A DNA stretch of 41,389 nucleotides. Source: Penicillus capitatus (lineage: Eukaryota; Plantae; Chlorophyta). Position numbers and translations under genes: made by a program. The notes below the pieces were generated by a model that was not told the DNA's origin, made no database searches, and saw only the letters and a list, made by a program, of their open reading frames with translations. Location: positions 2,327,413 through 2,368,801 of the forward strand of contig OZ287694.1 in the NCBI GenBank assembly GCA_965649825.1. The letters are read 5' to 3'. This document shows positions 10,264 to 41,389 of the stretch, piece by piece. The stretch's first letter is position 1; each line of letters begins with the position of its first letter.

Positions 10264-11517
10264 GATAGACATGAACACACTTCTTTGATTGTCTTCTGAA
10301 ATTTGCGGATCCGCGTAATGCGATCCTCGGGATGCATACAGAAGAAGGAGCATTCGATGTCTCTCATTCCTTCATCCAGTGAACAGATGTCACCGAAGCA
10401 AACGGAATGCAGACTGGAATCTTCAACCACTTCGACACTGCCAAGGTAAGTCATTTTCTTCGTCCGAGGATCCATAAAGATGCAGAACAGAAGAATCCAA
10501 TCTTGTGGTCTTCGTGTGCATCGCCAGTCGTCGAGTGGCGTGTAGAAGACAATCGTATGTGTCTTGTACACACTTTCTTCCACACTCAATTCACACAAAC
10601 GAAAATCGAGTTCTTCGAATGCCTCTATACGCACTGCTTTCGAAACGACTCCATTTCGCCTTGCGTACAGTAACCACAGGGATGGGTAGCATCCAAGATA
10701 TTCCGCGTCTCTATCGATCTGCAGACGTCCAAGATGTGTTACCTCATGAAAATCTATTGGACACGCATACCATCTTCTTCACATTGTATAGCCGTGTTCT
10801 CGGAGAGCAGATGTAAACATAGCTGCTGGGAGTGGCATAGACGTTTGTCGAGCTCTCCGTCTCTACACGTTTTCTTATGTCCCCGTCGTTAAGCACTCTG
10901 ATCCCGACTCTCGGGTCCAACAAATTAAGGCCATTATAGTGTCTCCGAACTTCTTCGTCCGGCGACCCAAAGGTCACTGGCATCGTCATGACATACGGAT
11001 CTGTGATAATCGAAAAACACAGTCCTATCTTTAACCAGCCATCGCGCATGAAAGACTTCACATCCGTCTTCTTTGTTTGCCGAAGTCCACAGGAATCAAG
11101 ATTCATGGACCCATCTTCTGGACAATACTTGTCTTCTGCAAACACACGCCAGTCGAGAAGGTACTCTACTTCGTCGCGCTATCTCGCAGAATCAGCATCT
11201 CATTGTCTCGCGTTTCTTTTTCGTTATGGCCATTGGCTGAACGGCAACTAAAAGTAGGCTCACCTATCTTGCAGCTCAGCTCTGGAGAGGCCTGGTCGAT
11301 GAGGACCATCCGGCACTTGAATTTAGGATAGTCTTTGTCCTTCGTCAAGAATGTGACGCGAAATCCGAACGCGTCCTCCCCAGTCGAGCAATGCATGTAG
11401 ATATCCCTGAACGGCAGCAGGTCGCCTTCTCCAATTCTCATAAAGAATGACGAAAAGCGTACCATGACCGTGTTTCGAGGTAACTCATTCCTTCCGTCCA
11501 GAACAGCGATTCGTCTA

Positions 11518-12550
11518 TACCTTTTCCATCCCAATTTCAATAAAAGTAAGAACGTATTCAAAACAGAAAAATGGTTTTCAAAAAGTACAGAATCATTTTG
11601 AAACCCAATATTTTACTTTCACAAATGACGACTCCATTTTCAATCTCCATGACAACGATTTCCCATCCGGTAACATCAAATTGAAACTATAATTTCTCAT
11701 TTCAAAACAAGTCATTTCATTTAAAAAATATGTCGTTGGTTTACAAAAGATATCCATTCATTTTCAATGAACATTATCTCATCTTCAAAAAAGATTAAAG
11801 CAATTATAAAAATAAACTCAATTCTGTGTCCCGTCAATGGAGCTTGCAGACGTTCCAATCTGTTACATCTTCAACGTTCCAATTGGACAAGGGATTCTTC
11901 GCCCCCTTTGGAGCGTTCTCGACACGAGTACTTCGGCAACAAGTGAGTGGCGTTTGTCCCTTGGTGTTTCTTTACTTTGTTTTAGGTATGAATGAAGAAA
12001 CAACTCCATAGCCTCGAAGAAGAGGGACTAAGCCAGGATCAAAACGCGGAGTTTACAAAAAGACTCGACGTTCAGCTCGCCTCAGGGTGGTAGAAGAAGC
12101 GAGGCAAGGTAGGGACTGGAAGGACATGGCTTCCAAGAATGGCATTCCATATTCAACTGCAAGAGGATGGGTGGCAAAGAATTGTTTTGAATTGTTTTTG
12201 CTTTTTTTTGGAGTCAGTCTCATAGGTGTGATGTCACTCTTGACATCTTGAGACCGATTTCAAATCGCTTTGGCAGTAATTGAAAAAGGGTTGACAGCAA
12301 ATTAAATTGAAGTAACAGTTGATGTAATTTGTCGACAGATTTTCAAAATGAACGGTTCGCTCTTTAAAAAAGATGACGTTCTTCTAAAATGAAATCATTT
12401 TATTTGAATTCGGACATGGAGTATTTGAAAATGAATTCATTGGATTCAGAGCTGAAATTTAGTTTTTCAAATTGATAATACGCATATTGAATTTGATTTT
12501 TTCGTTTTGAATACGTTCTTACTTTTATTGAAATTGGGATGGAAAAGGTA
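11518..12550 (+). mobile_element. Non-autonomous Tc1/mariner (IS630-Tc1) DNA transposon, 1033 bp
   Basis: Perfect 47-bp TIRs (11518-11564 / 12504-12550) and TA duplication (11516-17, 12551-52). Removing the element plus one TA restores the same 21-nt spacing (TCCGT...TTGCGGC) seen in copy A. Confidence 0.92.
11837..12185 (+). pseudogene. 5' remnant of a spliced Tc1-like transposase (HTH region)
   Basis: ATG at 11837 and GTGAGT...TTTAG intron 11943-11985 that preserves frame. Premature TAG at 12009-12011, then YKKTRRSARLRVVEEARQGRDWKDMASKNGIPYSTARGWVAK (HTH-like), then deletion. Confidence 0.65.
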
Positions 12551-14680
12551 TAGTTGCGGCTTCACCCACCACTGTCGCGTGACCGAGATTCTGAAGACAC
12601 GTGTACTGGCTTGATGGGGACCGCACCACATAACAGTTCTCGTTTTCATAGCGATGGCTGATTGTGAGTTCTTTGTCCGTCTCACACAGTCGCACACGAT
12701 ACTCAAACAAGAAGGTCTTGCTATGAAGTGGCAACACGATTTTCTGGCGAACTCCATAAGTGAAACTTTGTTCCAGCGCGTAACATGTACCTGGACAGAA
12801 ATACAGGAATGGGATGGAGGCTTCCAGATAAGGAGAAAACCGGTAATGAAAACGGGTTTCGTCATCAACCAGCGACATTTCAGCGATCTGACTTTGTAGA
12901 CATGACTGCACAGGCGCCATTCTATATCGATTCTCCTGTTCGCTTCGACCTTCACACATGCCTTCCTGCACGTCACATCCAAAGTCAACAGTGGTATGTG
13001 ACGTGTCACTGTTCGACTTACCAATCGCATCCCAGGAAAGAAACCTCCTCCACACTGAATTCCTCTCCGGGGCATTCGAGAACGTAATTGTTTATCTGGA
13101 CCTGTTGCAGTTGGGATGAAAGCGACGTTGTCGAAGCCGACAATGATACGGCACACCGTAATGGCGGCCTGGTTTTCAGACTCTTTGGTAACTTGCAGTA
13201 CGTATGGGATGTTTCTCCCACGCTGGTTCCAAACGCCGTTGTCTTCAAGAAGCGCGTGTCAGTATTAACCAAATGTGTAAAGACGTTTCGAGCGACGTAC
13301 GTGTCGAGGTGGCCATCCGTTTCCAGAAGAAAACGAAGAGCTTGAGAAAGAGCGGTTTTTGAAACGTCTGTAAAGCACCGAGATGCGCGTGATGACGTGG
13401 CAAGAAATTCGTCATTTCAAAAGGACGAGGGGACATTTTCACAAAGACATCGCCTCCAGTCGCGTTCTTGACGATCCCCGAACGTGCCCGAATGCAATCT
13501 GTCAAGGGACGAACCAATTCGAAAAGCTTCCCGTCTTTGTGGCTGACTATCCTTCTGGTCGCGAATACGTATCGAGTGCGTGCACCATGGCCACATCTCA
13601 CTGGATGCGACACTTGCTACGGTTCAATTTGTTGGTTTTGCCGAATGTCCGGAGTCAGTTTACCCGCATACGAGTGTCCAGGAAGCGCTGCAGTGACCGA
13701 CGACAGAGACAGTCATCAAGTTGTTTCAGAAAAACGCGCTGTGGAGACTCAATTTGTACCTTGAAGAAGAGGACAGTCACTGTGTCGGACGACGCTACTC
13801 GTTCGTGCAAGTGTGTTTCTTCGCACCGACTGTCTCATTGCAGAGCTTTACTGTCCTAAGTGTCGTCATGGGCGGTCACATCAGATACGAGACAGATCGC
13901 TGCAAGGACGCGATGAGCTGGCTCCCGACGCCACTCTTTTATTGTCCCTTTTCCTGTCTTCCGCCGTGAACAGTGATACGGCGGATTTCTTGATACGAGC
14001 GAAAAAAACGTGAACGTGTTAAAAGGACTGGAGTCTGATACAAAAACCCCAATTTATATGCCAATCTGCACGACGCGCACCTCACGTCATGCTAACGTCG
14101 TGGGACGCCTTGCTGGCTGCTTGATGTAACTTTACTTTTCCTTCCTTCCCTTCAGTTCCATCACAACAGATTAGACGGTTCGGATCCTCGTCTCCTCGTC
14201 GAGACATCGCTGCGACAGTCGGTTTGCCGAAAACTGCACTTTCTTGTTGTTGTTGTCTTTTCTTTTCTGCTTTTAAAATTTTGCTCGTGATCTCAGCCAT
14301 TTCCAGTAAGATTACGTCTGAGACTCGAGCATGCATTTGATAGAGTGACAGCAGTTCAACCGTGTCTGTATGTCAGTCAATCAGTCCATAGTGGGTAGGG
14401 GCATAGCGACAAGTGCACGGCAGCAGTCTGAAGAGCGACTCGCTGTTCAGCAAAATTACTTCCTTTTGAGTAGTGCTCGCCAGTGTAACGCCGACGACGA
14501 ATGAAATAATGAGCACTTAAGGACGTCGGTCAGGCAGAATCTTTTGCCCTTACGATCTTGTTGAAAAAAAAACGCTGTCTCCGGCGAGTGGAAGCGAAGA
14601 CCGAAACAGCCGCATGCATGAGTGGTGCTAACGAATCGAGACGAACGCGACTACTCGTCGCATTCAATTTCTTTACCACA

Positions 14681-14800
14681 CTGTCAGTGAACAGCTGTCC
14701 ACTCCTTGCAGCTGCCACGGAGACGCGTTGATATGACGTTTGTGTACGTTTGACGCGTATATAATCCGAACTAATGTACGTTAAAAGAGTCTTTGTAACC
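14681..14800. repeat. Diverged dispersed duplicate of 32535-32650 (probable exon relic)
   Basis: Shared TGTCAGTG(A/G)ACAGCTGTCCAC...GGAGACGCGTT...TGACGCGTATATA(A/T)TCCGAACT. Minus-strand peptides TKTLLTYISSDYIRVKRTQTS vs TKTVVTFTSSEYIRVRRKQTS. Confidence 0.75.
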
Positions 14801-14899
14801 AATAAGCCTTCGTCGTAATCGCGTCGTTCGTCGACTGCGCGACACACACGGAACTCAATCTTTCCATTAAAAAGTCAACCCTGTAAGAGGTTTCGCCTT

Positions 14900-16130
14900 C
14901 ACGGTGTTTGCTCATTTATTCGGCAATTCACACATTCAGCGAGATACTGATGTGTCCGGGGCGAAGAAGTTCTCATGACAGAACGCGTTTTATATAATTA
15001 CTTCACTGGTCGGACGTTACATGACGATTAGACTGCCACAACAAGACAGACAATTCTGATGGCCAAGAAACCTCGTCCAAAAATCGCATTGCCGTGTTGA
15101 AGTGCCATGGATGCAATCGGAAGAATGTTAGCGAGGATATGACTATTCAATCGTTCTTTGCTGACTTGTCGTACAAAACGTCTCGTCCAAGAAGACTCTC
15201 GCCATTTATCGAGACGGCATAAAAATGATATACAACAATGGACATGGACACGAGAGAGACTATAAAAGCCACTGAGCTAGAGTAAGCAGTGGAATGCTCG
15301 CTGTTTTTAAAAGATTTCGTCAATCTCTCCTTGACGAGGATCTAAGGTTATTCACGTGCTCGACTTTTGAACTTCCTTTGTGCACTGTCCCATTGGATCG
15401 ATGTCGCTTCACCTTAGAGCGAATCGATCGTCCGACTTTGCCGGGATCTCAGCGTATGCACTTGAAAAATTTCTACCGTTTTGCAATCGCAATTATTAGA
15501 CCATTTCAAAAAGTTAGTTTGCTCGCGCGTCCTGTATCAAGAGATTGGACAAGAGAAATCTAGTTGTATGACGTCGGCTGGTGATATTGGGCTGAGTGCT
15601 TCGACATCTGCTGTAAATATCATTGCCTTTTGGTAGCTACCGAGACTTTCTGAATGGCCTCGAGGGTATGCGTTGTATTTAAGATTGCTGAAGATGTGAT
15701 TGTCAAAAGTGGGTACATACAGAATGCGTTCAAGTACTCTATTGCTTGCATCAAACTGAAGCCCTGTCTGTACCAACGGTCTTGAAGGATATACACCGTT
15801 CTTCTTCGTTCGTGGACTTTTAGGATGACTTATAACTTTAAATAAAGTCTTCGAGTATCACTCTTATGGATTGTTCATCACTTCCTTAGCAATGGTGCTC
15901 ACGCACTCTATGGCTTCCTTTATCATAAGATTCTTCTTTATAGTGCTTTGGTGTGTCCGCAGAATAAGATTCCATGACTGCATCACACTTATTACCAGAT
16001 TCTTTGCTTCCTCATGCGTCACAACTGAGTACATTTTAGCATCTTGCACTGTTGTCATGACCATCGCGGTGTATAGTTTCAAGTTAATTCGATAAATTCC
16101 CTGATTCTTGTCTGCAGGCTTCACAATCTA
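14900..16130 (-). mobile_element. Degenerate Penelope-like retroelement reverse transcriptase relic
   Basis: Ordered motifs across stops and frameshifts: KPADKNQGIY...Y, LKVH/KKNGVYPSRPLV, MIFTADVEAL, HILANIL, RFLDE (YxDD-like), RTHQYL. Boundaries approximate. Confidence 0.65.
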
Positions 16131-17279
16131 TTGTTCTAAATGCTAGCCTTAGGAGGCTTTGCGAACGGAATTTCTCGCTGGTAAATGCATTGTTGCTTAG
16201 ATGGCTATGGCGACCTATCACCATTCGATAGGGATAACGAAATATTTGCAAGAATCATCTTTGGTATCATTGGTGACATGAAAACATCGCAACCCGAAAA
16301 TAACAATCTCTAGAACTTTGCGGAATATGTTTAAAATGTTATGACATTAAACAAAATGATAGAGAAGATACCTTGTTGAAGGAAGTTGAAATGCCACGTA
16401 CCGTTCAAACGGTATGCAGAAAAGTCCGATTATCCGATTGCGTTCAAAAGGAAGAAAATACTAACCGAGTTCGTGACGTTTCTTAACAAATTTTGATGAC
16501 AGAATCTTAAATTCAGTTGTCAGACCGTTGTCAAAACAAAATATACACCATTAAACCCTAGCTGATCACAAAGGCCGATCGCGAAGTCTTAAGAAAGAAA
16601 GTACTTAACGCGGCTCAAAAGACATCTTGACGTCATATATATTACGTTTTCCGATATCCGCTTTTGTGCGTATCGTCGACGCAGAATACAGACAAATAGT
16701 ATGTGTATCAGAGTTTCGATTAAGAACTAGGTCCTGTTAATACTTTTCAAACAACGTTGTGGCTATGCGTTCCTTAATGGCATCGGCGTTACGGTGCCGA
16801 CAACACGGATTGCTCATATTGGACACTTGTTCAAGAAAGAACTTAGCGTTCGTAGTCTATCTTAAACTCGCTTGATCAGCAAGACAAAACTCTCCTATCA
16901 GGTGCCAAGCTACCATTATGAAGACTCTTTAGAAAATCGGCAAAACCAGCAGACGCAATTGCACTGTTAATGCGAAAAATATGTCCTATGGACACCGGAC
17001 CACCTTTCTATAGACTGTCGTTCTTGTTCATTCGGACTGTAACTGTCATTCTTTCCGTCAATTAAGATTCTATGGTAAACGTGCATGGCTCAATGGTTGA
17101 TGGTGTATATCTTATTGTTGACAACCTCTGTTGCACAACCAGGAGGTATGAAGACGGGGTTAGATGTCATAGTAGTGATGAGACATATAGTGGAACACAT
17201 GACTTAACTTCATCACGGATAACGATCATGAGTTTGTGAGATTCTGGATTAGTTAGCCACGCTGTGCAAATAGCAAAAC

Positions 17280-23470: not shown

Positions 23471-23899
23471 GGTGACGAAAGAGCAAGGATACAACGCGCT
23501 TGGTCAGGTTTGTTCAGGAGACAGACGAGCACGACACCGTGCAGCCCACGGATACCCTGTCACATCAGCTCGATCATGCTCCCTGCCGTCAGCGTGGAGA
23601 TGTGCCGGTCGTTTACGACTTCACTAATGCGTCTCATGACATCGTCAACGTGATGCGTGACGTCCGACGATGACGCATCCGTGCAGTGAAGGGACGACAA
23701 TATTAGCTTTCTCAACATTCCATTCTATTTCTGTCTCTCTCTACGAGCCGGCAACGGAAACGAGTCGTCGTCTAACATGCGGTCGTCTTTCGGTAATCGA
23801 TCGATTACCATACCCCTGTCGCGTTCACACAGCGCGACAGTCAAACAGGACATAGGGTGTCGAACGGGATACAGGACGAAATCAAAGTGAACGAGTATC

Positions 23900-24140
23900 A
23901 TGTGTCGCCGGGCGATGTGACTCTGTCTTGTTTCTGAGGGTCCATGTTTCAGGGGGGTGCTGGTTGAATCATCCGAGGCCCTTTTCTCTGGTTCTGGTGC
24001 TAGGATGATTCACCTACCGAGTCACGTCGCGTCACCATGGGACTATATAATGCACAATCTGACCTTTGTTTCACCTTCTCCGAACACTGTAACAAGTCTT
24101 CCGCTGTGAATCGTTTGGTGCGGCACTTCCGCGCGACATC
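23900..24140 (-). repeat. Triplicated Cys-rich exon/intron relic (with 25120-25345 and ~28800-29045) of the multi-TM receptor-like family
   Basis: Near-identical CACAATCTGA...GTTTCACCTTCTCCGAACACTGTAACAAGTCTTCCGCTGTGAATCGTTTGGTGCGG at ~24052 and ~25261, with a diverged copy at ~28957. The minus strand has GT...AG intron-like borders. Confidence 0.65.
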
Positions 24141-25110: not shown

Positions 25111-26379
25111 GATGTGACACTGCCTTGTTCTGTGAGGGTCAACCGTGCGAGGGGGTGCTGCCTGTCTTGTCAACTGCGTCTTGGGACGCCTTTCTCTGGC
25201 CCTGAACACGAGCTGACTCACCATTCTAGAAGGGTTACGTCAGCAGGCGACTATATAATGCACAATCTGAGCCTTGTTTCACCTTCTCCGAACACTGTAA
25301 CAAGTCTTCCGCTGTGAATCGTTTGGTGCGGCGCTTCCGCGGTGACAGTGTTACGGGCTTGTGTCGCAATGCGGCAGTGGGCATTCGGATCCGTCCAATC
25401 ATCCAGATGCCACTTCCGGTGTCTGAATCACGCCACATTCCTTCCCAAACGATGGGTTTTTTCCTTTTGATGAATCGGCAGTGTGTCTTTTGTTTTTACA
25501 TCGCACATGAACGCCTGCTAAATGAATCGCAAGCGTCCGAAAAGGTCTGCTGTTGGGAATTGGGTATCTTGTTGTTTTTCATATTGTTCCTTTGACTGGC
25601 AATCAAAGTGCCGACAGTTTTTGCCAAACCCTTCAAATGACTGACGAACCACAGCAAAGTCTTGACCTTGTCGATCGTCAGTGAGAAAGTAATGGGTGAA
25701 TGGTACGAACGAAGAATTATTGCATGACAGCATCGGACTTACGAGAATTCGCTGTCGGCATTCACACTCGTCAAGAAATAAACGAGTGGTTCGAAGAGAC
25801 CGACCTCTCAGTCGCAACAAAGAGCAGTGAACAAAGGAATCCGTCCACATAAATGTTCCGTCGATTTTGAGATTTGTATGGCATTTTGGGAAACCTGAGT
25901 CCTAAACAGCTTCTTTTTGTTGAACGTGTGATTTCGAAACCAAAAAAGTTCTGTGTCCGTTTGCAGGAACCGAGAGCAATCCGGTTGTTTTGATGGCAAT
26001 GTTGCCATTGTCGGTGTATGATGAACGTCCTTTATTTGAAGTTCGATGATACGTACTGCGATGAATCAATCAATCCTCTATCGACGACGCCCAGTCTGCG
26101 AAGATGCTGACATGGTGCACTGAAGTGCGTCCAGCTGCAGATCAGTCATCACAACATTGTCACCATTCAAAAGTGAAGAGGCACAGCCGTGGACATTTGA
26201 TTGCCATTCAAACACTCTGTGCTATCCTCCATCTACAGAATCAATGATCATCGCCAATAAGGAAAGCCCCACAAAGATGAAGACTTACTGTCTGGCTCGT
26301 ATCAGCGTGAAATAGCGACTGTTTGACGCTGTCGTCGTTGTCTGTTCAGTGGAACGCTCATGTGGACTGTATTCAGCCA

Positions 26380-30229: not shown

Positions 30230-30925
30230 TCGTCTTCGGCTTGCCTAGTCTTGGTCTTCTGCCTTCACCTTCTTGGTCACTTGCTTGGTCTTCTGCCTTG
30301 CTTGGTCTTGGTCTTCTTCTTCGGCTTACCTTGTCGCCTTCGCCTTGTGCCTGGTCTTGCTTGGTCATCTTCTTATCTGGGGTTGCTTGGTCTTTGGTCT
30401 GGTCTTTGGTCTTCGGCTTGCTTCGCCTTGTGCCTTATTGGTCGCCTTCGCCTTCGCCTTCGCCTTCGCCTTGGTGCTTGGTGCTTGGTCGCCTTCGCCT
30501 TCGCCTTGGTGCTTGGTCTTGGTCTTGGTCTTGGTCGCCTTCGCCTTCGCCTTGGTGCTTGGTCTTGGTCGCCTTCGCCTGGTTGCTTAGTCTTCGCCTT
30601 CGCCTGGTTGCTTAGTCTTCGCCTTCGCCTTCGCCTGGTTGGTCGCCTTCGCCTTGTGCCTTATTGGTCGCCTTCGCCTTGTGCCTTATTGGTCGCCTTC
30701 GCCTTGTGCCTTATTGGTCGCCTTCGCCTTGTGCCTTATTGGTCGCCTTCGCCTTGTGCCTTATTGGTCGCCTTCGCCTTGTGCCTTATTGGTCGCCTTC
30801 GCCTTGTGCCTTATTGGTCGCCTTCGCCTTGTGCCTTATTGGTCGCCTTCGCCTTGTGCCTTATTGGTCGCCTTCGCCTTGTGCCCTCTGCCTTGTGCCT
30901 GGTCTTGCCTGGTCTTGGTCTTCGC
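30230..30925. repeat. Strand-biased hierarchical satellite built from 5-6 nt modules, with a homogenised 25-bp core array
   Basis: Modules TTCGCC, TTGGTC, TTGTGC, TTGGTG. Perfect GGTCGCCTTCGCCTTGTGCCTTATT x9 plus a 20-nt partial copy at 30641-30885. Confidence 0.95.
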
Positions 30926-31119
30926 CTTCTCCTTGCTCCATCAGCATCCGTCACCGAAAAACGGACACATAAGATCTCTACCCTCTTAGCTTTCCACGTC
31001 GAACGTTAAGATTATCTTCTCTCCTCGCCCGCCCGCCTCGACAAGGTACCGCCCTCCACACGAAAGGCCCATACAACCTCCGACGAAACATAGTTCACAC
31101 GCCGGGCCGCTTCAAGAGG

Positions 31120-32150: not shown

Positions 32151-32472
32151 TGTCGCGCAGGTCGTTAGATGGAAACAATTCGAACAGCGAGCGCACTTAA
32201 ACCTTTGAAACGTGAAGTCTTACAGAACGAAAGACAAGACCTGTAGATCTACGTTTTCATAGGGTTTTGTTTAGCGATGTCACATGACGGTCGTGGGTCT
32301 ATATTAAGTAACAAAAAGGAATATTCTTCGAAGATTCCGGAATCTGTACGTGAAAGCCGCGGGTCTATTTGCGGATGGGAAGGTACAGAGAACCTACGAC
32401 CTGTCACTTGGAGATCGACACAAGTGTAGGTAGGTGAGCTCATTGTTGGGGGCGTGTTGGCTTAACACAACA
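32151..32472 (-). mobile_element. Diverged solo LTR of the same family as the 33848-40624 element
   Basis: Starts TGTCGCGCAGG and ends TTAACACAACA. Shares AAGTAACAAAAAGGAATATTCT, GCCGCGGGTCTATTTG and GAGAACCTACGACCTGTCAC-TGGAGATCGACACAAGTGTAGGTAG with the intact LTRs, plus indels. Confidence 0.9.
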
Positions 32473-32999
32473 ACGTTCGTGCACGTTTGATCCGTATGCA
32501 ATCCGAACTGAACTTATGAGACGTTCGTGTACGTTGTCAGTGGACAGCTGTCCACCTTCGTGCAGGGAGACGCGTTCACGTGACGTTTGTTTGCGTCTGA
32601 CGCGTATATATTCCGAACTCGTGAACGTTACAACAGTCTTTGTTAAACGATACGCCTGTCGGCAAGATGAGGGGATGGTGATAATGGGCCATGTGGGAGC
32701 CAGCGATGGACTGAGGGGACTGTCTGGCTGGGCAAGGGGCCACGCCGCCAAGGGGCGCTCAGGGTCTTGTCAGAAGGGAGCTTAGGCGCGGAAGGGGCCA
32801 AAATTCTCTGGCTCAGACGAGTGGGTGACTCATCGATTTCGAGCGTCACATCGTCGGGGACGGATAAAAGAGTTTTTTTCGCCGGTGAACGTTGTGCATG
32901 TTTCTGTTGTAAAGTTTTCAAGTGCGTTCCATCAGTCTGGCTGACGACGACGAACACCGCGAAGCTTCCCCTGCGACTGTTCCTTACCCACCGCTGTAC

Positions 33000-33847
33000 A
33001 CAGAGTCACCTTATCTCTCGGCCCTTGGCTTCTGGCGAGAAGGCGAACGACGGAGCGTGGACGCTTCGGACCTTTTCCAACGGGGTGCAGAGCAGGTGGT
33101 GCACAACACCGAGCTGTACGAGTCCAGACGAAACTCCTCCCACGAAGAAAGAGTTGAGAACCAGAACGGAGCGGGCCCATCTACTCACCTGAACGGAGCG
33201 ACTCAGCAAGTTCCTCCTCGGGTGGTCAACGAGCCTACGACTAGTGTCACGCGAGCATCTTCCCCAGACCGACAACGCCTTCGTCGTATTCGCATCGTTC
33301 GTCGGCGACAACTGCGATGTGACCTCCATCTGTCGATCGCGCCGTTAACGGCCTGATGGACGTTTAATTGCATAGAATGGCATGCGGCCGAGTTAGTTAG
33401 TTGGTCAGGTCGTTCATCCGACGAAGAAGGAAATTCTCAAGCCAAAATGGACGTCGCCAGGGACGTGTTGCACGAGATCTCGTGAAGACTGCCATTTTAC
33501 ACGAGACGTGCACGAAGCCTTCGTTTTCCCGGGAGTTCTCTTCGGGGGATAACAGGAGTCAAAGCAGACAACATCATCCCCGTCACAACCGGCAAAGAAC
33601 GAACGCACACTCGGGATGGTGGAGCCTTCGGGAAACCAATGCAGCGGAAGGACATGTGCTGGGAGAACGGCTGATTAACGATGCCGAAAGAGCTCTGACA
33701 TTCCACTGCTGCGAGTAGTACTCGAAGCAGTCCCTTCAAGTGACAACGACCTGATAGCGCACGAGCTGCACACGAACAGAACGGAACTCAAGCCAAAGGA
33801 ATCGTGGAACTCGAAGAAGACCAGCCAGAAAGACTTCAAACAACCGC
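33000..33847 (-). pseudogene. Possible degenerate TM-region remnants of the receptor-like gene interrupted at 40625
   Basis: Hydrophobic stretches in several frames (e.g. ARSVLVLNSFFVGGVSSGLVQLGVVHHLL) with multiple stops; no clean frame. Confidence 0.3.
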
Positions 33848-34151
33848 TGTCGCGTAGGTTTTTGGATGGAAACAATTTTAAAGGTGGGCGCACGTAGACC
33901 TGTGAAACGTAAAGTCTTACAAACGAAAGACAAGTTCTGTACATCTACAACGCTTTTATAGGGTACTTTATTTTAAGTAACAAAAAGGAATATTCTGCAA
34001 AGATCCGGAATCTACTTGGAATCTGTGACGTAGAGCCGCGGGTCTATTTGTGGATGGGAAGGTATAGAGAACCTACGACCTGTCACCTGGAGATCGACAC
34101 AAGTGTAGGTAGATGAGCGCATTATCGCGAGCGCTACGCCTTAACACGACA
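33848..34151 (-). repeat. 3' LTR
   Basis: Base-by-base match to 40321-40624. Confidence 0.97.
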
Positions 34152-34155
34152 TGGG

Positions 34156-34173
34156 CCCACCTATCTTCTGTCT
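34156..34173 (-). promoter_or_regulatory. Polypurine tract overlapping the pol stop codon
   Basis: AGACAGAAGATAGGTGGG, 4 nt upstream of the 3' LTR on the minus strand. Confidence 0.6.
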
Positions 34174-37157
34174 AATCTCCGAAGGAAGTCACGATGGACA
34201 TTGTGCAGCGTCGAACCATTGGGCATACGGATATCCCACCGGTGGTCACTATGTTCTTTCACTACCACACAAGGATAGACCCATTTGGAGTATAGTTTGG
34301 AGTCGAGGCGGTCGGCCAACTTCGAGTTGTACCACGAGACCTCGGCTCCCACTTCAATGGGACGGATCTTAACTTTCTTGTGGTGCCTTGTCTTATTTTG
34401 CTGGTGTGCCTTAATTATTCGTTGATAAGCTAGTCCTCGGTCGGTGTCCAGCTGTGGTGGACTAGTTATCGTGCCGTTCCGTTGTGTGCCAGTTAGAAGG
34501 TATTGTGGACAGAACAGAGTCGTACTATGAATCGTTCGGTTGATCTCATGCACGCTCGTGCTCACATGTGTCGTCCAATCACCCCCCTTTTCCGCCCATA
34601 TCCTCCGAAGTCGATTTACGAGGTTTCGGTTGAACGCCTCGACAGTGCCTGCACTTTTGTGGGAATAGGTTGGGGTGTGTAGCAGATCAATTCCGTGCTG
34701 TGCGCAGGTACTCTCGAAGCTCCTGGCAATGAAGGCGCTTCCGTTGTCGCACAGGATCCTCTGTGGAGCCCCAAAGTTTCGTGCCCATTCGAGTACCAGC
34801 TTAATAGCCTGTGCTGCCGAGCACGTCTTACATGGGCGCCCCATGCCAAACTTAGTGAAAGCGTCGATCCCGGTAGCGATATACCGAAACCCGTGGCTGC
34901 CACGGTTCAGCGGTCCTATGAAGTCTAGACACAGTGTGTGGTTCGGGGATGGACTGTCAATCATACCCAAGTCCACCTCAGATCGTGGGTTGCGAAACAT
35001 TTGGCACGTCTCGCAGTTATTGACGTAATCTCGCACGTCATTGAAGTCGTTCGTCCAGCGGGTACCGTCGGACCGCAGGTTCAGGAATGTCTTCTTGACC
35101 CCGAAGTGGCCTGCATGCGCCTTCTTGATGAGCTCGGTCCGTTCTTCCGGAGTATAGGATACGGAGTTCACTTGATATCCCTGTTGCTTCTTCTTGGTGT
35201 GAAATTCGACAGGTGCGTTGTCTCTCCATCGGCTGAGAAGATCCGCTATCACGTTGTCCTTCCCCTCTACAAAACAGAAGTGGAGACGATCATGGGAAAA
35301 GTGGTGCCGGAGCCAGCAATGCTGTCTCTGGATCCGGAGGTCCTTGAACTTGTGCAGGAATGTCGGCTCCTTGAGCCAATTGACCGTCGCCATGTTGTCG
35401 GAGTAAACGAATACCTCCGTCTGCTTGATCACAAAGTAACATTCCTTCAAGGCCCGTACTATTCCCATCAGTTCTCCCAGAAAGCTTCCGACCCTCTGTT
35501 TCGTCGTGAAGGAGCCAAAGAGAACAGGTTGCAAGGTCGAGTTAAGCAATACGTATCCGAACTGGTTGAGTGGGTTACCACACCAATCCGTATACAGATG
35601 GAATGGCCCCCTTCTTTCCAACGTCAGTCGGTACGTACTGATGCATAGAGATTGAACTGCGTCCTTGTAGATCTCGTCAGCTTTGGTGTAGTCATTGTGT
35701 TCGCGCTTCAGGAATGGCTTGAGTTGCGTGACGATCGCGTCGTATTTGTAACAGTACTGTGCCAGTTGCTGGCACAGACCCATGGCCTTCTGAACGTCGT
35801 GACGTGATGTGATTGTCGGCAGCTTCTGGAGTATGGCCTGGGCCCTGTGGTAGGGGTTTAGCGTCCCGGCACTGAGCTCAGTACCCAGAAAGCTCACCGA
35901 AGTCTCAAACCAGTCACACTTTTGGCAGTTGATCGTCAAGCCATATTCGTCGAAACGTTTCAATAAAAGCTTGGTCTTGTCGAGGAGTTCCTCCTCGGTT
36001 TCGCCGCCGATCAATATGTCATCGAAGTATCGTATCACATCCAACCCCTGCAGGATGTGGGTCATGCGGTTATTGAAAAGCTCCGGACTGACGTTGACGC
36101 CTTGTGGCAGTCTTCGAAAGCCGTACGTCACGCCGTTCCAATGTAGTGCAAAGAAAAGCGAAATATTGTCGTCGATGGGGATGGAGCCGTAGCCGTGAAC
36201 AATGTCCACGATGGTGTATACGGTCCACTTGGGATCCACCTTCTGGATGATGTTCGACACCGGAATGATGGTCCCCCCTTGCGTTCCTTCGAGGTACGTG
36301 TTGATGTCGCGGAAGTCAATGGTGGGCCGGATCTTGCCATTCGGTTTGCGTATAAAGTTCAAAGGTGCTACGACGGCGTGTATTGCCTCGGCAACAGACA
36401 ACGGTCGTATGACACCCTCCTTGTTTAGCGAATCGATCTCTTTTGAGATCTCTTCGTTGGTGAGACCCGAGACGTAGTTCTCCCTCCAGCATGGCTTAGG
36501 CTCGCCCATCCAACAAAGATCCCTGTTGCGTACCCTGATGTCCCACAGCCTGCTGGTCGTCGGGCGAATGGTGTCCGAAAAGACCAGGGGAAATTCTTGT
36601 CTTAGCCGAGCCACTATCGCATCCTTGTCGATTGGTGTAGTGATGCTCATGATATTGACACGTTTGGTCTTTATTCGCAGCGGGTACTCTGTCCCATCAA
36701 CATCGACGATGGATTCCACGTCACCCTTGGCACAGCACAATCGCATCTTGCTGGTGATATGCTGTGGAACATCGGATTGGTTGAAGATTACCACGCTGAT
36801 CTGACCATTCGTGTGTACCTTGACCTTGCAGAAAATGTTTTTATTGTGGGTGCAGTCAAAGAATGCAGTCCAGGTTGTTGTTTCCGAGAACTTGAAAGGT
36901 AAGATGATACGGCGACTCCGAAAGGGTCCTAACACAAAACTTCTCCCTGCCATGAAGACGATCCAGCCGTTTTGCTTGAATGGGAATAGCTCCCGGTCAA
37001 TGGATTCTGTGACTTGGAGTGGTGAAGGTGTTAGTCTTTCTTCTTGTCTATTTGGCGGTGTCTCGTCGTTCCAGTTCGATTTCACTAGTACCAGGCGTTT
37101 CACGTGCGGCTTCTGTTGTGCGTCATGCGCCTGCTGAAAAACAGGCTGGTCCCTCAG
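34161..37157 (-). CDS. pol: Pol (-1 frame): degenerate dUTPase-like domain, RT, RNase H, integrase
   Basis: RT: RKPNGKIRPTIDFRDIN, RLPQG, YFDD at 36018-36029. RNase H: LYTDW, ELMG, YSDN. Integrase: HAGH...CETC, LDFIGP, CDNGSAF, VEAFN. The frame is open upstream to the slippery site (KKLRDQPVFQQAHDAQQKPHVKRLVL). Confidence 0.95.
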   Translation of the reverse strand: MRDQPVFQQAHDAQQKPHVKRLVLVKSNWNDETPPNRQEERLTPSPLQVTESIDRELFPFKQNGWIVFMAGRSFVLGPFRSRRIILPFKFSETTTWTAFFDCTHNKNIFCKVKVHTNGQISVVIFNQSDVPQHITSKMRLCCAKGDVESIVDVDGTEYPLRIKTKRVNIMSITTPIDKDAIVARLRQEFPLVFSDTIRPTTSRLWDIRVRNRDLCWMGEPKPCWRENYVSGLTNEEISKEIDSLNKEGVIRPLSVAEAIHAVVAPLNFIRKPNGKIRPTIDFRDINTYLEGTQGGTIIPVSNIIQKVDPKWTVYTIVDIVHGYGSIPIDDNISLFFALHWNGVTYGFRRLPQGVNVSPELFNNRMTHILQGLDVIRYFDDILIGGETEEELLDKTKLLLKRFDEYGLTINCQKCDWFETSVSFLGTELSAGTLNPYHRAQAILQKLPTITSRHDVQKAMGLCQQLAQYCYKYDAIVTQLKPFLKREHNDYTKADEIYKDAVQSLCISTYRLTLERRGPFHLYTDWCGNPLNQFGYVLLNSTLQPVLFGSFTTKQRVGSFLGELMGIVRALKECYFVIKQTEVFVYSDNMATVNWLKEPTFLHKFKDLRIQRQHCWLRHHFSHDRLHFCFVEGKDNVIADLLSRWRDNAPVEFHTKKKQQGYQVNSVSYTPEERTELIKKAHAGHFGVKKTFLNLRSDGTRWTNDFNDVRDYVNNCETCQMFRNPRSEVDLGMIDSPSPNHTLCLDFIGPLNRGSHGFRYIATGIDAFTKFGMGRPCKTCSAAQAIKLVLEWARNFGAPQRILCDNGSAFIARSFESTCAQHGIDLLHTPTYSHKSAGTVEAFNRNLVNRLRRIWAEKGGDWTTHVSTSVHEINRTIHSTTLFCPQYLLTGTQRNGTITSPPQLDTDRGLAYQRIIKAHQQNKTRHHKKVKIRPIEVGAEVSWYNSKLADRLDSKLYSKWVYPCVVVKEHSDHRWDIRMPNGSTLHNVHRDFLRRLDRR

Positions 37158-37163
37158 TTTTTT
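37098..37163 (-). promoter_or_regulatory. Predicted -1 programmed ribosomal frameshift signal
   Basis: A AAA AAC heptamer (37163-37157) directly before the ORF1 TGA; -1 frame continuous with pol; downstream GCCTG/CAGGC hairpin at 37129-37146. Confidence 0.8.
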
Positions 37164-40100
37164 GAAACAGAAACGTTGTGGATGAGTATTTTGTTACCTT
37201 TGTCGTCATAGACTGCATCCTCCTCGCAGTTGAGCTGCAACTTGAATGCCTGAAGGGCCTGCATTCCCAGAATCGGGCGTTGGACACCTTCACAGACGAC
37301 AAATGGTATCTCGGCGCTCTGTTTCCCGAGGGTGCACAACAAAGAGATCTCGCCACTCGTCTTGGTCGTCTTGTTGTTAAAGCTAATCACGTCCCGAACT
37401 TTCGACGACCTTAGGACCAAGTTGTGTTTCCTCGCCAGCTTCGCTGGAAGGACATTCGTTTGCGCACCGGTATCCAGCAGGCAAGAGATCTTTCCGGCAA
37501 TGTCCTCCATGCTGAGTGGGACATTGTACTGTAACATCCTTCGAGACTCTTGGCGCTGTACCGGATTCGTCTGTGCCACGGTCCTTGATTCTGGTGCCTT
37601 TGGAGTTTTCGTGACCGTGGGGCAGTCCTTCCAGGAGTGGCCTTTCTGACCGCATCTTTCGCATGTGTGCCCGACGTCTTGACGCATGTTCTTCCGGCCA
37701 TCCGCCCTGGCGTGTCCTCGACTGTTCTGTTCCTGTTCCAGACACTCGTCGATGATCAGTTGCACACGCGGCCAATTCTCTGCATTTCCCCACGGCAACC
37801 CACGCAGGCGTGACTGGATGTGTGCATTCGCGATGTTGAAGATCCGCTCAGTCGCTGTAGCGTACTTGAGTGGGTCTTGTACCAACTCAAGTAGCTTCGA
37901 CATTCTTCGTGCGAACTGAGACAGATTCTCCTTTCGTTTGGGCAACAGCGTGTGCACGTCCTTCATGGAGGGTCCCTTCTCGTTGTGTCTTGTGGGTGCG
38001 TGACTCACTGGTGTGCGTGGGGTTGCGGCATCCTTTTCCTGACGCTTTTGTCCCTCTTGCTGTCGTCGCGTGGCCTTTTGAACGTCGGGTGACAATTCAG
38101 GGTGATGCTGCTCACAGCTAACCTGCTGAATTCGTGTCCGATCCTCGACTGCTTCTAATCGCTGTCCGATACTGGTAAAGCTCGCTTCAAGACTTGTCTC
38201 CATTCTCCCTTGTCTATTGACAAGTCTCCTTTCGAGGTCTTCGGCGCGTCTCATGAGCTCCTCTTGCATTGCCTGTATACCTTCCATCAGGGATTGTATT
38301 AAGCCTCCTTGTTCAGTGTCTCGACGGGTCTCTGATAACGGATCTGGGTGGATTTCAGTCACTATATTCTGTTGGTTTGCCCGTCGTGGCGACTGCTGAG
38401 CCGGCGGAGGCGGTGGCGACTGCTGAGCCGGCGGAGGCGGTGGCGACTGCTGAGCCGGCGGAGGCGGTGGCGACTGCTGAGCCGACTCCTGGGTGGTCTG
38501 TTCTTGAGTCGGTTGTTGCGCCTGAGCCCCTTGTCCCCGCATCAGATTCCACACGATTCTGAGTAGCCAGCAAATCCCCTGGGTTATGGCTACGATTCGC
38601 ATCACAACCTTGCGGATGTTCCTGAATACATTCAAAATCCACGCGGCGACGTTGTATAGAAGCATAGCAGCGCCTACCAACTGCCAGCCGTTCCCCGTAG
38701 CCAGGGCGCTACGAATTGCTTTGATTCCAAATTTATCCCATAGTGTGCCTAACACCCATGTAACTGCGTTATCACGGGTACCGGTTAGCCATTTTATAGA
38801 GCGGTCGTGGAATGTATCATTCCCGTGACTGCTCTCCCAACCGTTAGCCTGGCTTTCGCAGATGCAATCGTCTAGAGCCGTCTTCATGTTGCCTGTGTGT
38901 TCGTTGATCTTGTTTATTGTCTCGCGGATATTATTGAGAGTGTCATTGAGGTGCTGCCAATCGACATTAGAACTCTTAGCATGTGACTCTTGTGACGTTT
39001 CAGGTCCTTGGTTGTCTGTCGACGAACCATTTACCGTGATGTTCAGGAACTGGGTGATGCCGTCCAAGGTCTCTGCGACGTGTCGCACTTCTCCTACGAG
39101 AGAGGACTTCCTAGATGGGAAGTTGTTGATGATCGAGACTGTCGCAGTCGTCAACAAACTCGCTGGGGAGAATACGGACAACACACCTCTGTTTGTCGCC
39201 CAGTTGACGATCCCATGAGCAGTAAGACCTACGACAGCACTAGTGATCATTGCGTCAATATAGTCTGGCCAAGTGATGTCGATTCCCATTCTGAAGTCGG
39301 GGATCATGTACCAAGATTGCCCATCTTCGACAGGTAGAGCATCTCCCATCTCGTGCAAATTGAAGACATTTTCTGGAGGGAGTTCTTGTTCTGTCCATTG
39401 GTCTTCGGACTCTTCGGACTCTTCGGACTCTTCGGACTCTTCGGACTGTTCGGGATCGGATCGCGGAGCCTCCTCGTCGAATAGATCTTCCGCCAATTCT
39501 ACCGGAATCTCGTATTCGTCATACTCGAGCTTGTAAGCTTCCGCGCTGGGTTCCGAATCCATCGGCAAGTCCGTATTAGTTTGTACGTCTTCATGTTCTG
39601 CGACGGGGATAGCGAACTCAAAACGCCTGCGGAGGGCTCTGGCTGAGCCGGCTATGGTGCGTCTGTCTTCTTCGGCATTTGTGTCTGTACACACGAGGTC
39701 ATATATCTTCTGTCTAGATGCGTCCAGCACCGCTTTTGGTTCCCACGTCTGTGAATGAGGATTGCCCGGGATTAGTAGGAAGAAGGACATTCCTGTAGCC
39801 AGAATCGGCTTTCCTCCCCAATGTATCAAGGAACCCTCGCCGAGAAGCATGATCAGCATATTGGCTTCCTCGTACGTAATGCCTTCGCTTGCGTCATAGA
39901 AGATGATGCCGTTAGGGCACTTTTTGACGAAGACCGCGATCTCCCTTTGAATTATTCTAGCCTCATTCACAGATTTGGATTGCGGTTTAATATACTTGAA
40001 ACAACTGCTCTTTTGCAGACTAGGCTCATTCTTGATTCCGTTAACCAGTGAGTCGCATGTACTTGTCGTACAGTAGAGAACTGTAGACGTCGCTTTATCG

Positions 40101-40321
40101 TAAAAGTTGTTGTCTACCTTGTCGTTTATACTACGAGCAAGGTTATCGACATACTGATCTATCCAGTCTCCGCCACCGCGGATGTTTTCCTGGATGCTTG
40201 TTAGGGTTTTATTCCGTAACCCTATTATTTCATCCTTCCAGCCAAACCATGAGCCGTGCGTGACGGCGGCAAAGTGTAGAAGAACCCACAACAGTATTGG
40301 AAGCACTCGCTCCGAAACCAT
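37154..40321 (-). CDS. gag-pro: 1055-aa ORF1: signal peptide - AAA+-like (torsin/ClpB-D2-like) domain - acidic linker - Env-like/TM region - Gag (CA-like, CCHC) - aspartic protease
   Basis: MVSERVLPILLWVLLHFAAVTHG leader; IAVFVKKCPNGIIFYD...MLLGEG...GKP; TM-like WQLVGAAMLLYNVAAWILNVF; MHR-like KENLSQFARRMSKL; CERCGQKGHSWKDC at ~37620-37663; LLDTGA and ILGM protease motifs. Confidence 0.88.
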   Translation of the reverse strand: MVSERVLPILLWVLLHFAAVTHGSWFGWKDEIIGLRNKTLTSIQENIRGGGDWIDQYVDNLARSINDKVDNNFYDKATSTVLYCTTSTCDSLVNGIKNEPSLQKSSCFKYIKPQSKSVNEARIIQREIAVFVKKCPNGIIFYDASEGITYEEANMLIMLLGEGSLIHWGGKPILATGMSFFLLIPGNPHSQTWEPKAVLDASRQKIYDLVCTDTNAEEDRRTIAGSARALRRRFEFAIPVAEHEDVQTNTDLPMDSEPSAEAYKLEYDEYEIPVELAEDLFDEEAPRSDPEQSEESEESEESEESEDQWTEQELPPENVFNLHEMGDALPVEDGQSWYMIPDFRMGIDITWPDYIDAMITSAVVGLTAHGIVNWATNRGVLSVFSPASLLTTATVSIINNFPSRKSSLVGEVRHVAETLDGITQFLNITVNGSSTDNQGPETSQESHAKSSNVDWQHLNDTLNNIRETINKINEHTGNMKTALDDCICESQANGWESSHGNDTFHDRSIKWLTGTRDNAVTWVLGTLWDKFGIKAIRSALATGNGWQLVGAAMLLYNVAAWILNVFRNIRKVVMRIVAITQGICWLLRIVWNLMRGQGAQAQQPTQEQTTQESAQQSPPPPPAQQSPPPPPAQQSPPPPPAQQSPRRANQQNIVTEIHPDPLSETRRDTEQGGLIQSLMEGIQAMQEELMRRAEDLERRLVNRQGRMETSLEASFTSIGQRLEAVEDRTRIQQVSCEQHHPELSPDVQKATRRQQEGQKRQEKDAATPRTPVSHAPTRHNEKGPSMKDVHTLLPKRKENLSQFARRMSKLLELVQDPLKYATATERIFNIANAHIQSRLRGLPWGNAENWPRVQLIIDECLEQEQNSRGHARADGRKNMRQDVGHTCERCGQKGHSWKDCPTVTKTPKAPESRTVAQTNPVQRQESRRMLQYNVPLSMEDIAGKISCLLDTGAQTNVLPAKLARKHNLVLRSSKVRDVISFNNKTTKTSGEISLLCTLGKQSAEIPFVVCEGVQRPILGMQALQAFKLQLNCEEDAVYDDKGNKILIHNVSVSKN
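38391..38484 (-). repeat. 27-bp in-frame tandem repeat encoding (AQQSPPPPP) x3 plus a partial copy
   Basis: GACTGCTGAGCCGGCGGAGGCGGTGGC x3 + 13 nt. Confidence 0.95.
39402..39446 (-). repeat. 9-bp in-frame tandem repeat encoding an SEE acidic run
   Basis: TCTTCGGAC x5. Confidence 0.95.
40309..40320 (-). promoter_or_regulatory. Primer-binding site, initiator-tRNA-Met-like
   Basis: TGGTTTCGGAGC immediately after the 5' LTR, vs plant-type iMet PBS TGGTATCAGAGC (2 differences, one of them wobble-compatible). Confidence 0.7.
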
Positions 40322-40624
40322 GTCGCGTAGGTTTTTGGATGGAAACAATTTTAAAGGTGGGCGCACGTAGACCTGTGAAACGTAAAGTCTTACAAACGAA
40401 AGACAAGTTCTGTACATCTACAACGCTTTTATAGGGTACTTTATTTTAAGTAACAAAAAGGAATATTCTGCAAAGATCCGGAATCTACTTGGAATCTGTG
40501 ACGTAGAGCCGCGGGTCTATTTGTGGATGGGAAGGTATAGAGAACCTACGACCTGTCACCTGGAGATCGACACAAGTGTAGGTAGATGAGCGCATTATCG
40601 CGAGCGCTACGCCTTAACACGACA
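40321..40624 (-). repeat. 5' LTR with TATA box
   Basis: Matches 33848-34151; TATAAAA on the minus strand at 40427-40433. Confidence 0.97.
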
Positions 40625-41389
40625 GCGTCTGTATAGGAGTGACCGTAACCGTACTGGCAAGAACCGCAGAGGATGCCTTCGTATCCCTCGGCACACTGAG
40701 GGTACTCCGGGAACGTCGGCATTGGGCTTCCTCTTCGAACATATTCCTCGACCGCCTCCAGATTCTCGTCGACTCTGGATGGATTCTCGTAAAACTCGGT
40801 CAGAACCCGCTCTCTTCCAGGATAGGAGCATGCGTCGGGGTGGACGCACTTGTGGATGCAGGGTGAGAATGGCGAGGAATGCCAGTAGCCATCGGACGGC
40901 ACCAAGGCCGCCCCGCCGGCGCATTTGGCATTGTCTTCGCATCCTCGGCAATCAAGAGACGGATCGAAACCGTACTGCTCACTCGGACAGCTTTTGCAGG
41001 TTTCATCCTGCTGTCTTTCTCCTGGGCGACATTCCCTCGTCGAGAAAGACAACACCAGACGGACGCCTGGGTTGCTCTCGCTTTCGATCGTGACGTTGCT
41101 GGAGATGCCGACGCCCCACGCCATGGTGTTGTTGATGACAGCGACGCCTTCGACGGCCGTATACCTGAGATCGCCCACGATGTTGTTGGAAACTAGTGTG
41201 AGGCGGAGACTGGCATCGTCGATGCCTCGAGTGATCGTCTGATAGAAAATGTCCTGCACAATGATCCGCAGCTTTGACGAGTGACATGGATCGCTGCCTT
41301 TTTTGCACGGAAGGGCCAAAGAGTCTCCGCTGGCCACCTGCTTCAACTGAGAGCCATCCAGCCCTTTAACGGACAGATATGCGGCCTTA
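40625..41389 (-). CDS. Cys-rich ectodomain of a PMP-like multi-TM receptor-like protein, interrupted by the LTR element (partial)
   Basis: RECRPGE, CKSCPSEQYGF, CEDNAKCAGGAALVPSDGYWHSSP, QCAEGYEGILCGSCQYGYG. The frame is open from the window edge to the LTR. Confidence 0.75.

Follow-up and report, generated by a model that had tools for sequence, protein, structure and literature searches.

A probable AAA+ pseudo-ATPase domain encoded in frame with Gag by a young long terminal repeat retrotransposon of Penicillus capitatus

What could a domain built like the ATPase modules of Clp/Hsp100 chaperones and torsins be doing at the head of a retrotransposon polyprotein, and can it still handle nucleotide? 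The question is raised by a stretch of 41,389 nucleotides from the green alga Penicillus capitatus (contig OZ287694.1, positions 2,327,413 to 2,368,801; hereafter the window), whose minus strand carries a complete long terminal repeat (LTR) retrotransposon of 6777 bp (33848-40624) with both reading frames intact. The first open reading frame (ORF) of this element, ORF1 (37154-40417; 1087 amino acids (aa) listed), runs without stops or frameshifts, and a preliminary description, made from the letters of the window alone, had placed in it a torsin/LAP1-like AAA+ domain with degenerate catalytic motifs. We are highly confident of the core of the answer, namely that the domain has an AAA+ fold, has lost its motifs and lacks a lid, keeps conserved cysteines and a conserved arginine, is under purifying selection and is fused in frame to Gag; what it does for the element is answered below with lesser and graded confidence. 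All coordinates refer to the window, and all parts of the element lie on its minus strand.

Fold and catalytic state of the domain

The domain, of the alpha/beta type and without a lid, occupies 39602-40252 (ORF1 aa 56-272). The preliminary placement at 39600-40205, roughly aa 72-273 when read on the minus strand, does lie within ORF1, but the fold starts a little earlier, at aa 56. The strings that had been quoted for it are all present in ORF1 (IAVFVKKCPNG...FFLLIP at aa 160-217, VLYCTTST at aa 113-120 and ALRRRFEFAIPV at aa 261-272). Searches with the single domain sequence (Pfam, PDB and a word-index protein search) returned nothing usable, and the signal is thus visible only with a profile or a structural model. 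The best single-sequence match in the PDB, geminin (E 0.06), fell on the acidic tail and was rejected as compositional. We describe in the following what was obtained with two profiles, of which the first, built from an alignment of eight sequences, also served for modelling with AlphaFold2 (AF2), whereas the second comprised twelve sequences.

The AF2 model based on the eight-sequence alignment reached a predicted local distance difference test score (pLDDT) of 81.9 and a predicted template modelling score of 0.83; a model made from the single sequence had a pLDDT of 41 and was excluded from the fold search. The order of its elements, a-a-b1-a1-b2-a2-b3-a3-hairpin-b4-a4-a-b5, is that of a five-stranded parallel alpha/beta ASCE core, which is preceded by two helices at the N-terminus (from aa 56) and which contains a beta-hairpin (model residues 142-145 and 148-151, between a3 and b4) ahead of the sensor-1 strand. 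Structure prediction combined with Foldseek had been suggested as a check in the preliminary description, and the AAA+ alpha/beta fold was indeed recovered: there were 125 matches in the PDB at E<=1e-3, led by CLPB (7xbk_C, 2.0e-6), the TorsinA filament (6oif_A, 2.8e-6) and TorsinA from its complex with LULL1 (5j1s_A, 3.1e-6), followed by ClpC and ClpB, with TorsinA at ranks 2, 3 and 5 (E ~3e-6). LULL1 itself (5j1s_B) was found at rank 11 (E 1.1e-5, 229 columns, a target of 235 versus a query of 230 residues) and showed the best TM-score (0.58 by query, 0.57 by target) and the lowest root mean square deviation (5.8) among the 50 matches listed. In the viral structure library BFVD nearly all Foldseek matches were AAA+/Clp/Lon ATPases and replication helicases, the exception being a phage structural protein that was matched weakly at rank 37 (E 3.4e-3).

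The profiles pointed to the same group of proteins. Searched against all PDB chains, the eight-sequence profile retrieved human CLPB/Skd3 (E 4.9e-5), then ClpC-D2, ClpB-NBD2, Hsp104-NBD2 and ClpA-D2, and with the twelve-sequence profile CLPB was matched at E 1e-5 and Clp/Hsp100 D2 modules made up 44 of the 46 matches listed. The alignment begins at the helix that precedes Walker B, takes in the Gly-rich hairpin and ends at the sensor-1 strand, and both the profile search and hhalign pair the hairpin of the domain with the Gly-rich stretch of ClpB and CLPB. When the family alignment was compared with E. coli ClpB NBD2 by hhalign (E 2.5e-4), D175 fell opposite D677, and A176 opposite the catalytic E678; a forced global hhalign is unreliable beyond this Walker B-sensor-1 core. 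The resemblance to ClpB NBD2 that had been noticed in the preliminary description exceeds chance, as is borne out by hhalign, by the profile match to CLPB and by Foldseek (2e-6). Judged by profile and by modelled fold, the domain is best assigned as an AAA+ large subdomain of the Clp/Hsp100-D2/torsin branch.

The residues by which such a subdomain would bind and hydrolyse ATP are largely gone, in the element as well as in the cellular relatives from Chlorellaceae that are introduced below. Both motif readings given in the preliminary description, a degenerate Walker A and a Walker B that reads YDA, proved correct. The P-loop remnant (40055-40072, aa 116-121), whose position between b1 and a1 was taken from the secondary structure of the AF2 model, reads CTTSTC and contains no GK[ST]; a Walker A of the form GxxxxGK[ST] is absent from all ten family sequences covering the P-loop, and in all ten the remnant is bounded by two cysteines. 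According to a low-confidence extended alignment it is also about 5 residues shorter than the loop of ClpB. At Walker B (IIFYDA, 39890-39907, aa 171-176) the Asp is retained and the catalytic Glu has been replaced by Ala. This Glu is found in none of ten sequences, its column being occupied by Ala in 4 of 4 element sequences and by Arg in 6 of 6 cellular copies, and the preceding Asp is kept in 4/4 element sequences but in 0/6 cellular domain copies, so that the Chlorellaceae proteins show basic residues where the element has Asp-Ala. There is no Asn at the sensor-1 column. A helical lid is missing as well, and with it sensor 2: in the element, b5 is followed immediately by a linker of which 34% is acidic, and the cellular relatives reach their next repeat or the end of the protein within a few tens of residues. 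With the P-loop, the Walker B Glu, the sensor-1 Asn and the lid all missing, the domain is predicted to be a nucleotide-free AAA+ large subdomain, a catalytically dead pseudo-ATPase.

What has been conserved instead are a few cysteines and an arginine-rich C-terminal end. Three cysteines, located at b1/a1 and b2, and R265 are shared between the element copies and the cellular relatives, and the two cysteines that flank the former P-loop may be joined by a disulfide in the lumen. The C-terminal motif, which includes the last strand b5 (39602-39643, aa 259-272), has an Arg at the R265 column in 10/10 sequences that reach it and at each of the two preceding arginine positions in 8/10; A259, A261, L262 and P271 do not vary in alignment A3. 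In AAA+ proteins, arginine fingers lie at the end of the helix before the last strand, and R265 is found at the end of the helix before b5 in the AF2 model, which makes it possibly an arginine finger. A profile of the C-terminal 75 residues gave one chance match only when searched against the PDB.

The element, its relatives and the selection acting on them

The domain is part of a young, that is recently inserted, and complete LTR retrotransposon of the Ty3/gypsy order, as is evident from LTRs, primer-binding site (PBS)- and polypurine tract (PPT)-like tracts, a gag CCHC motif and the order protease, reverse transcriptase, RNase H, integrase; on this point the preliminary description was right. 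The 5' LTR (40321-40624; 304 bp with TG...CA ends) is 100% identical to the 3' LTR (33848-34151), a direct repeat of 304 bp which likewise has TG...CA ends. The PBS-like tract (40303-40320) starts with TGG and adjoins the 5' LTR, and the purine-rich PPT-like tract (34152-34172) adjoins the 3' LTR. The pol frame (34161-37193), encoding reverse transcriptase, RNase H and integrase, is open, lies in the -1 frame relative to ORF1 and overlaps it by 37 nt; its Pfam matches are RVT_1 (2.6e-22), rve (6.7e-15) and Integrase_H2C2 (4.4e-11). No target-site duplication was seen in the sequences flanking the element (33833-33847 and 40625-40640), despite the identity of its LTRs.

The listed ORF1 begins within the 5' LTR, and its start is likely M33, the first ATG in frame that lies beyond the body of the LTR, because relatives of only about 30% identity share this Met and the next residues near their N-termini (the same residues are found at or near the N-termini of P0001, P0002, P0005, P0006 and P0011; related proteins are cited by these numbers throughout). 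The ATG (40319-40321) spans the boundary between LTR and PBS, with its A being the last base of the LTR and TG opening the PBS-like tract. The first five ORF1 codons (40303-40321) are thus the PBS-like tract itself, and the N-terminus that this tract encodes has been retained in relatives as distant as P0005, P0006 and P0011 (~30% identity), which suggests that the tract serves both as a primer site and as coding sequence. M33 opens a signal-peptide-like leader (40253-40321, aa 33-55) with a charged n-region, a hydrophobic core of 15 residues and small residues at -3 and -1, and a hydrophobic leader is located at the equivalent place in P0001, P0005 and P0011; the leader was recognised by hydropathy and sequence and would be cleaved ahead of aa 56.

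Downstream of the domain, ORF1 continues with the acidic linker (39257-39601, aa 273-387; 34% Asp+Glu). It is poorly conserved except for a short motif at 39320-39385, kept in P0001, P0003, P0004 and P0007, which could be a processing or docking site. The linker is followed by a conserved membrane region (38540-39256, aa 388-626) with three to four hydrophobic segments and four N-x-S/T sequons, at N459, N463, N491 and N533; together with the one in the AAA+ domain, N69, five such sequons precede the Pro/Gln-rich repeat linker (38348-38539, aa 627-690). Relatives of the membrane region are P0001, P0003, P0004 and P0008, and it has neither a relative in the PDB, as judged by a profile search, nor one in Pfam. 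Past aa 690, ORF1 encodes a coiled-coil-like Gag, a CCHC zinc knuckle (37619-37666, aa 918-933; the zf-CCHC match with E 0.013 is below the Pfam cut-off, and C-C-H-C was read directly from the sequence) and a retropepsin-type aspartic protease (37232-37528, aa 964-1062; gag-asp_proteas 9.3e-7, RVP 6.8e-4).

A HMMER scan of 1.84 billion cluster representatives found 11 proteins. Ten of these, which all come from ENA assemblies, belong to related elements, either as fragments or as complete copies. P0001 is a full relative of ORF1 (1124 aa) with its parts in the same order, and identity between the two amounts to 57% in the N-terminal part and 74% in gag-protease (BLASTP). P0005, P0010 and P0011 represent a lineage that is about 31% identical in the domain, and P0003 and P0007 a further one. 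P0002 led to locus L001 on a contig of 1.84 Mb (ENA ERZ25074695, ctg340529), which harbours at 9743-16534 a second copy of the element with its own identical LTRs and 91-94% DNA identity to the copy in the window. ORF1 of the L001 copy falls into two reading frames and pol is open, and no in-frame stops were seen in the pieces compared. A locus returned by a metagenome scan with three sequences (L003) was a laminin-like animal contig with a match of 40 residues and was discarded as spurious. No exact match to ORF1 turned up in the public assemblies that were consulted. Altogether, at least three element lineages, with identities as low as 31%, have retained the domain, and at least two of them show the in-frame fusion of leader, domain, acidic linker, membrane region, Gag, CCHC and protease.

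The copies in the window and at L001 permitted an estimate of the selection acting on each part. The ratio of nonsynonymous to synonymous substitution rates (dN/dS), calculated piecewise according to Nei-Gojobori for the sequences as they stand, is 0.20 for the domain, 0.25 for the acidic linker and membrane region, 0.23 for gag/protease and 0.16 for pol. The domain is under purifying selection like gag and pol. This low ratio, together with the retention of the domain across lineages and its in-frame fusion with Gag, marks it as a working part of the element rather than a passenger.

The dS values of the same comparison differ about tenfold along the element, from 0.06 in the membrane region through 0.20 in the domain and in pol to 0.58 in gag/protease. 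This suggests that the copies in the window and at L001 are mosaics which arose by recombination between lineages. A dispersed repeat shared by the two contigs with 84-86% identity (window 23899-24133 and 25238-25347; L001 1402-1641) fits an origin of both from the same or closely related genomes.

The eleventh protein found by the scan, P0009 (KAI7844878.1 from Chlorella ohadii, E 4.5e-5), is cellular and is listed in UniRef as a SAP domain-containing protein. Its relatives were found only in Chlorellaceae, where they occur in C. sorokiniana, Micractinium conductrix and M. tetrahymenae (P0022-P0025) and are annotated only as hypothetical or SAP-domain proteins. In all of them a SAP domain at the N-terminus is followed by a basic stretch of low complexity, a single hydrophobic segment likely to span the membrane, and copies of the domain, one in Micractinium and two in Chlorella. 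These domains are 17-24% identical to that of the element and show the same cysteine pair, the Cys in b2 and the Arg motif. The domain is all that the Chlorellaceae proteins have in common with the element: they contain neither membrane region nor gag nor protease, and the domain follows SAP and one transmembrane segment in these cellular proteins, in contrast to the leader that precedes it in the element. The combination of a chromatin-binding SAP domain, transmembrane segment and luminal domain is an architecture like that of LAP1, an inner-nuclear-membrane protein of animals, beyond the known range of torsins.

The remainder of the window contains features apart from the element and some that adjoin it. 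A diverged LTR-like copy at 32151-32476, about 1.4 kb past the 3' LTR and 81-84% identical to the LTR of the element, may be a solo LTR or the remnant of a related element. A Cys-rich ORF with a weak match to DUF7630 (40546-41346, minus strand) extends into the 5' LTR, so that this gene, or a site next to it, may have been where the element inserted; no clear continuation of the ORF was seen past the 3' LTR. At 30430-30932 there is a long tandem array with a period of 25 nt, in a stretch of strong AT skew (-0.475) and inside ORFs without a family match. An MTHFR ORF on the plus strand (1018-1971; 317 uninterrupted codons) is of the short bacterial type with its best PDB match in Thermus, and its stretch has a G+C content of 36-37% compared with 45-55% elsewhere in the window. 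Nop14 had no match in the PDB, and no tRNA genes were found in the window.

A luminal role for the domain and the alternatives

How could a dead AAA+ subunit serve a retrotransposon? The explanation that accounts best for the observations starts with the leader, which would send the domain into the endoplasmic reticulum (ER) lumen or the perinuclear space. There the domain would act as a non-catalytic AAA+ protomer. Either it would bind to an AAA+ partner in the lumen, to which it might contribute R265 as an arginine finger, or it would assemble with itself, and this docking or assembly would hold or organise the membrane-anchored Gag-protease polyprotein at the membrane of the ER or the nuclear envelope. 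The domain would most likely have been acquired from a cellular LAP1-like gene. Taken as a whole, we give this explanation, a dead AAA+ domain that organises membrane-anchored Gag as a luminal non-catalytic protomer, slightly better than an even chance of being correct. The activator-like step, docking on a partner, is by itself a tentative proposal that falls well short of even, and a LAP1-type mechanism and a role at the nuclear envelope are plausible by analogy. We consider it unlikely that the full extent of this analogy applies, with the element encoding a mimic of a LAP1-type activator that, in a host other than an animal, would serve a so far overlooked AAA+ machine in the lumen of the ER or nuclear envelope, and with the Chlorellaceae proteins being the cellular activators of that machine. 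If true, a torsin/LAP1-like system would exist outside Metazoa, and a retrotransposon would have appropriated the activator of that system in order to position or move Gag assemblies at the nuclear envelope. For the crossing of the nuclear envelope and the advantage in a multinucleate host that had been envisaged in the preliminary description, there is no evidence in the window.

Several observations weigh against the luminal protomer explanation or against parts of it. No luminal ATPase partner is known for the element, and torsins, which with their cofactors are regarded as a metazoan system, are described as occurring in most metazoans and as being absent from plants and fungi (bioRxiv 10.1101/2025.11.07.687155; PMC7175109). 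The likeness to torsins and LAP1 that had been claimed for the domain holds for fold, size, the dead and lid-less core and the TM-score with LULL1, but it does not extend to sequence, as neither the eight- nor the twelve-sequence profile matched LAP1, LULL1 or a torsin in the PDB at E<=10. Pfam gave no match for the single domain sequence and only chance-level matches for the members of the alignment, and the AF2 model rests on only eight aligned sequences. The C-terminal end had been compared with the arginine-finger tail of LAP1/LULL1; a conserved Arg-rich end is present, but its equivalence to a finger is not demonstrable by alignment. When the C-terminal profile was compared with ClpB NBD2, 126 of 1178 scored shuffles performed equally well or better, and the forced global hhalign put the Arg motif away from the arginine finger of ClpB, with zero confidence. 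With respect to topology, four hydrophobic spans would place Gag on the luminal side of the membrane, and a leader ahead of the domain with membrane segments behind it differs from the type II anchor of LAP1/LULL1. The window domain also keeps the hairpin before sensor 1 that is missing from the published topology of LAP1 (PMC4358337). Finally, the ENA-derived proteins of the same source as the element copies yielded no cellular relative.

The most serious alternative dispenses with the host: the dead domain would homo-oligomerise in the lumen as a scaffold and cluster membrane-anchored Gag without any host ATPase. AAA+ large subdomains pack side by side via the arginine-finger surface, a general property of the family that would lend itself to such a scaffold, and the tandem domain copies of Chlorella make domain-domain contacts plausible. 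The lack of a known partner ATPase and the reported absence of torsins outside animals also favour this alternative. However, an Arg in 10/10 sequences at a finger-like position is better explained by contact with nucleotide in an active neighbour, and LAP1, the closest structural precedent, works with a partner. We regard assembly without a host ATPase as rather unlikely, if less so than any of the following alternatives.

Leader, luminal domain and membrane region might also represent an envelope-like module, that is, a surface or membrane glycoprotein of the particle with the role of env. The signal-like leader, the five N-x-S/T sequons, the several hydrophobic segments and a membrane region without known relatives would be compatible with this; yet the fold is that of an ATPase subunit and not of any known fusion or receptor-binding protein, no viral structural protein is prominent among the matches in BFVD, and the module is located in frame upstream of gag instead of in a separate 3' ORF. 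Such a role thus appears improbable. Even less can be said for a passenger fragment, a piece of a cellular gene carried along without function. The domain does have cellular relatives, and LTR retrotransposons occasionally capture host domains (PMC9289625), but a dN/dS of 0.20 as in gag and pol, the occurrence of the domain at the same place with the same cysteines and Arg in lineages that are 31% identical, and its in-frame fusion with Gag in at least two lineages make this very improbable. That the domain is an active ATPase which binds and hydrolyses ATP with unusual motifs is hardly credible: the Walker B Asp is retained in the element copies and a Lys is found beside the second P-loop Cys in three of four element lineages (the window copy not being among them), but GxxxxGK[ST] is lacking in 10/10 and the catalytic Glu present in 0/10 sequences, the loop is shortened in the low-confidence alignment, and there is neither a sensor-1 Asn nor a lid and hence no sensor 2.

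Comparison with known systems

The luminal domain of LAP1 is an atypical AAA+ domain which has no Walker A, a degenerate Walker B and no C-terminal domain, carries a conserved Arg at the finger position and works with a partner ATPase; a disulfide ties its C-terminus to helix a1 and blocks the pocket (PMC4358337). The window domain resembles LAP1 and LULL1 in its AAA+ alpha/beta core with two extra N-terminal helices, in its similar size and in the absence of a lid, in the missing Walker A and degenerate Walker B, in the conserved Arg near the C-terminal end and in the conserved cysteines at the former nucleotide pocket. In contrast to LAP1, it contains no C-terminal Cys, its conserved cysteines flanking the P-loop remnant, and in contrast to both LAP1 and LULL1 it is embedded in a Gag-protease polyprotein. 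The Chlorellaceae relatives do show the LAP1 arrangement of a nucleoplasmic domain and one transmembrane segment N-terminal of the luminal domain. The retained hairpin points to independent degeneration rather than orthology, and descent from a Clp-D2/torsin-like ancestor that degenerated independently is no less likely than a distant orthologous relationship to LAP1. Because of the lack of sequence similarity, the hairpin, the different cysteine pattern and the different topology, we describe the domain as LAP1/LULL1-like in design and do not assign it to the LAP1/LULL1 family.

The second modules of Clp/Hsp100 proteins (CLPB, ClpB NBD2, ClpC D2, Hsp104 NBD2) are the only families found by sequence and are also among the top Foldseek matches. 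These cytosolic and mitochondrial unfoldases differ from the window domain, which has neither their catalytic motifs nor their sensor-2 lid and stands alone behind a signal-like leader. With torsins the domain shares its structural neighbourhood, an N-terminal signal sequence, conserved cysteines and a predicted luminal residence. Torsins retain Walker A and B, both sensors (1 and 2) as well as the small domain, and are without an arginine finger (PMC4358337); the window domain represents the converse. We found no report of a torsin in green algae in the literature, and the green-algal family with LAP1 architecture described here makes a torsin-like system outside animals testable by surveys of sequence and structure.

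Among retroelements, we found no earlier report in the literature of a torsin-, LAP1- or AAA+-like domain, nor of a dead AAA+ subunit placed behind a secretory leader and fused to a membrane region and Gag. The Gag of intracisternal A-particle (IAP) elements is targeted to the ER, and the element in the window is similar in that an N-terminal leader would direct its Gag to the ER membrane. Fixed extra domains are rare in LTR retrotransposons, a known case being the AlkB-type demethylase domain carried by orchid Ty3/gypsy elements (PMC9289625), and like these the window element encodes a rare, fixed and selected accessory domain in its polyprotein. What distinguishes it from both the AlkB-bearing and the IAP elements is that the accessory part is a dead AAA+ subunit joined to a membrane region of several segments, which suggests that the particle-forming protein of a retroelement can be tethered to the lumen of the ER or nuclear envelope by a module of the kind with which animals switch on torsins.

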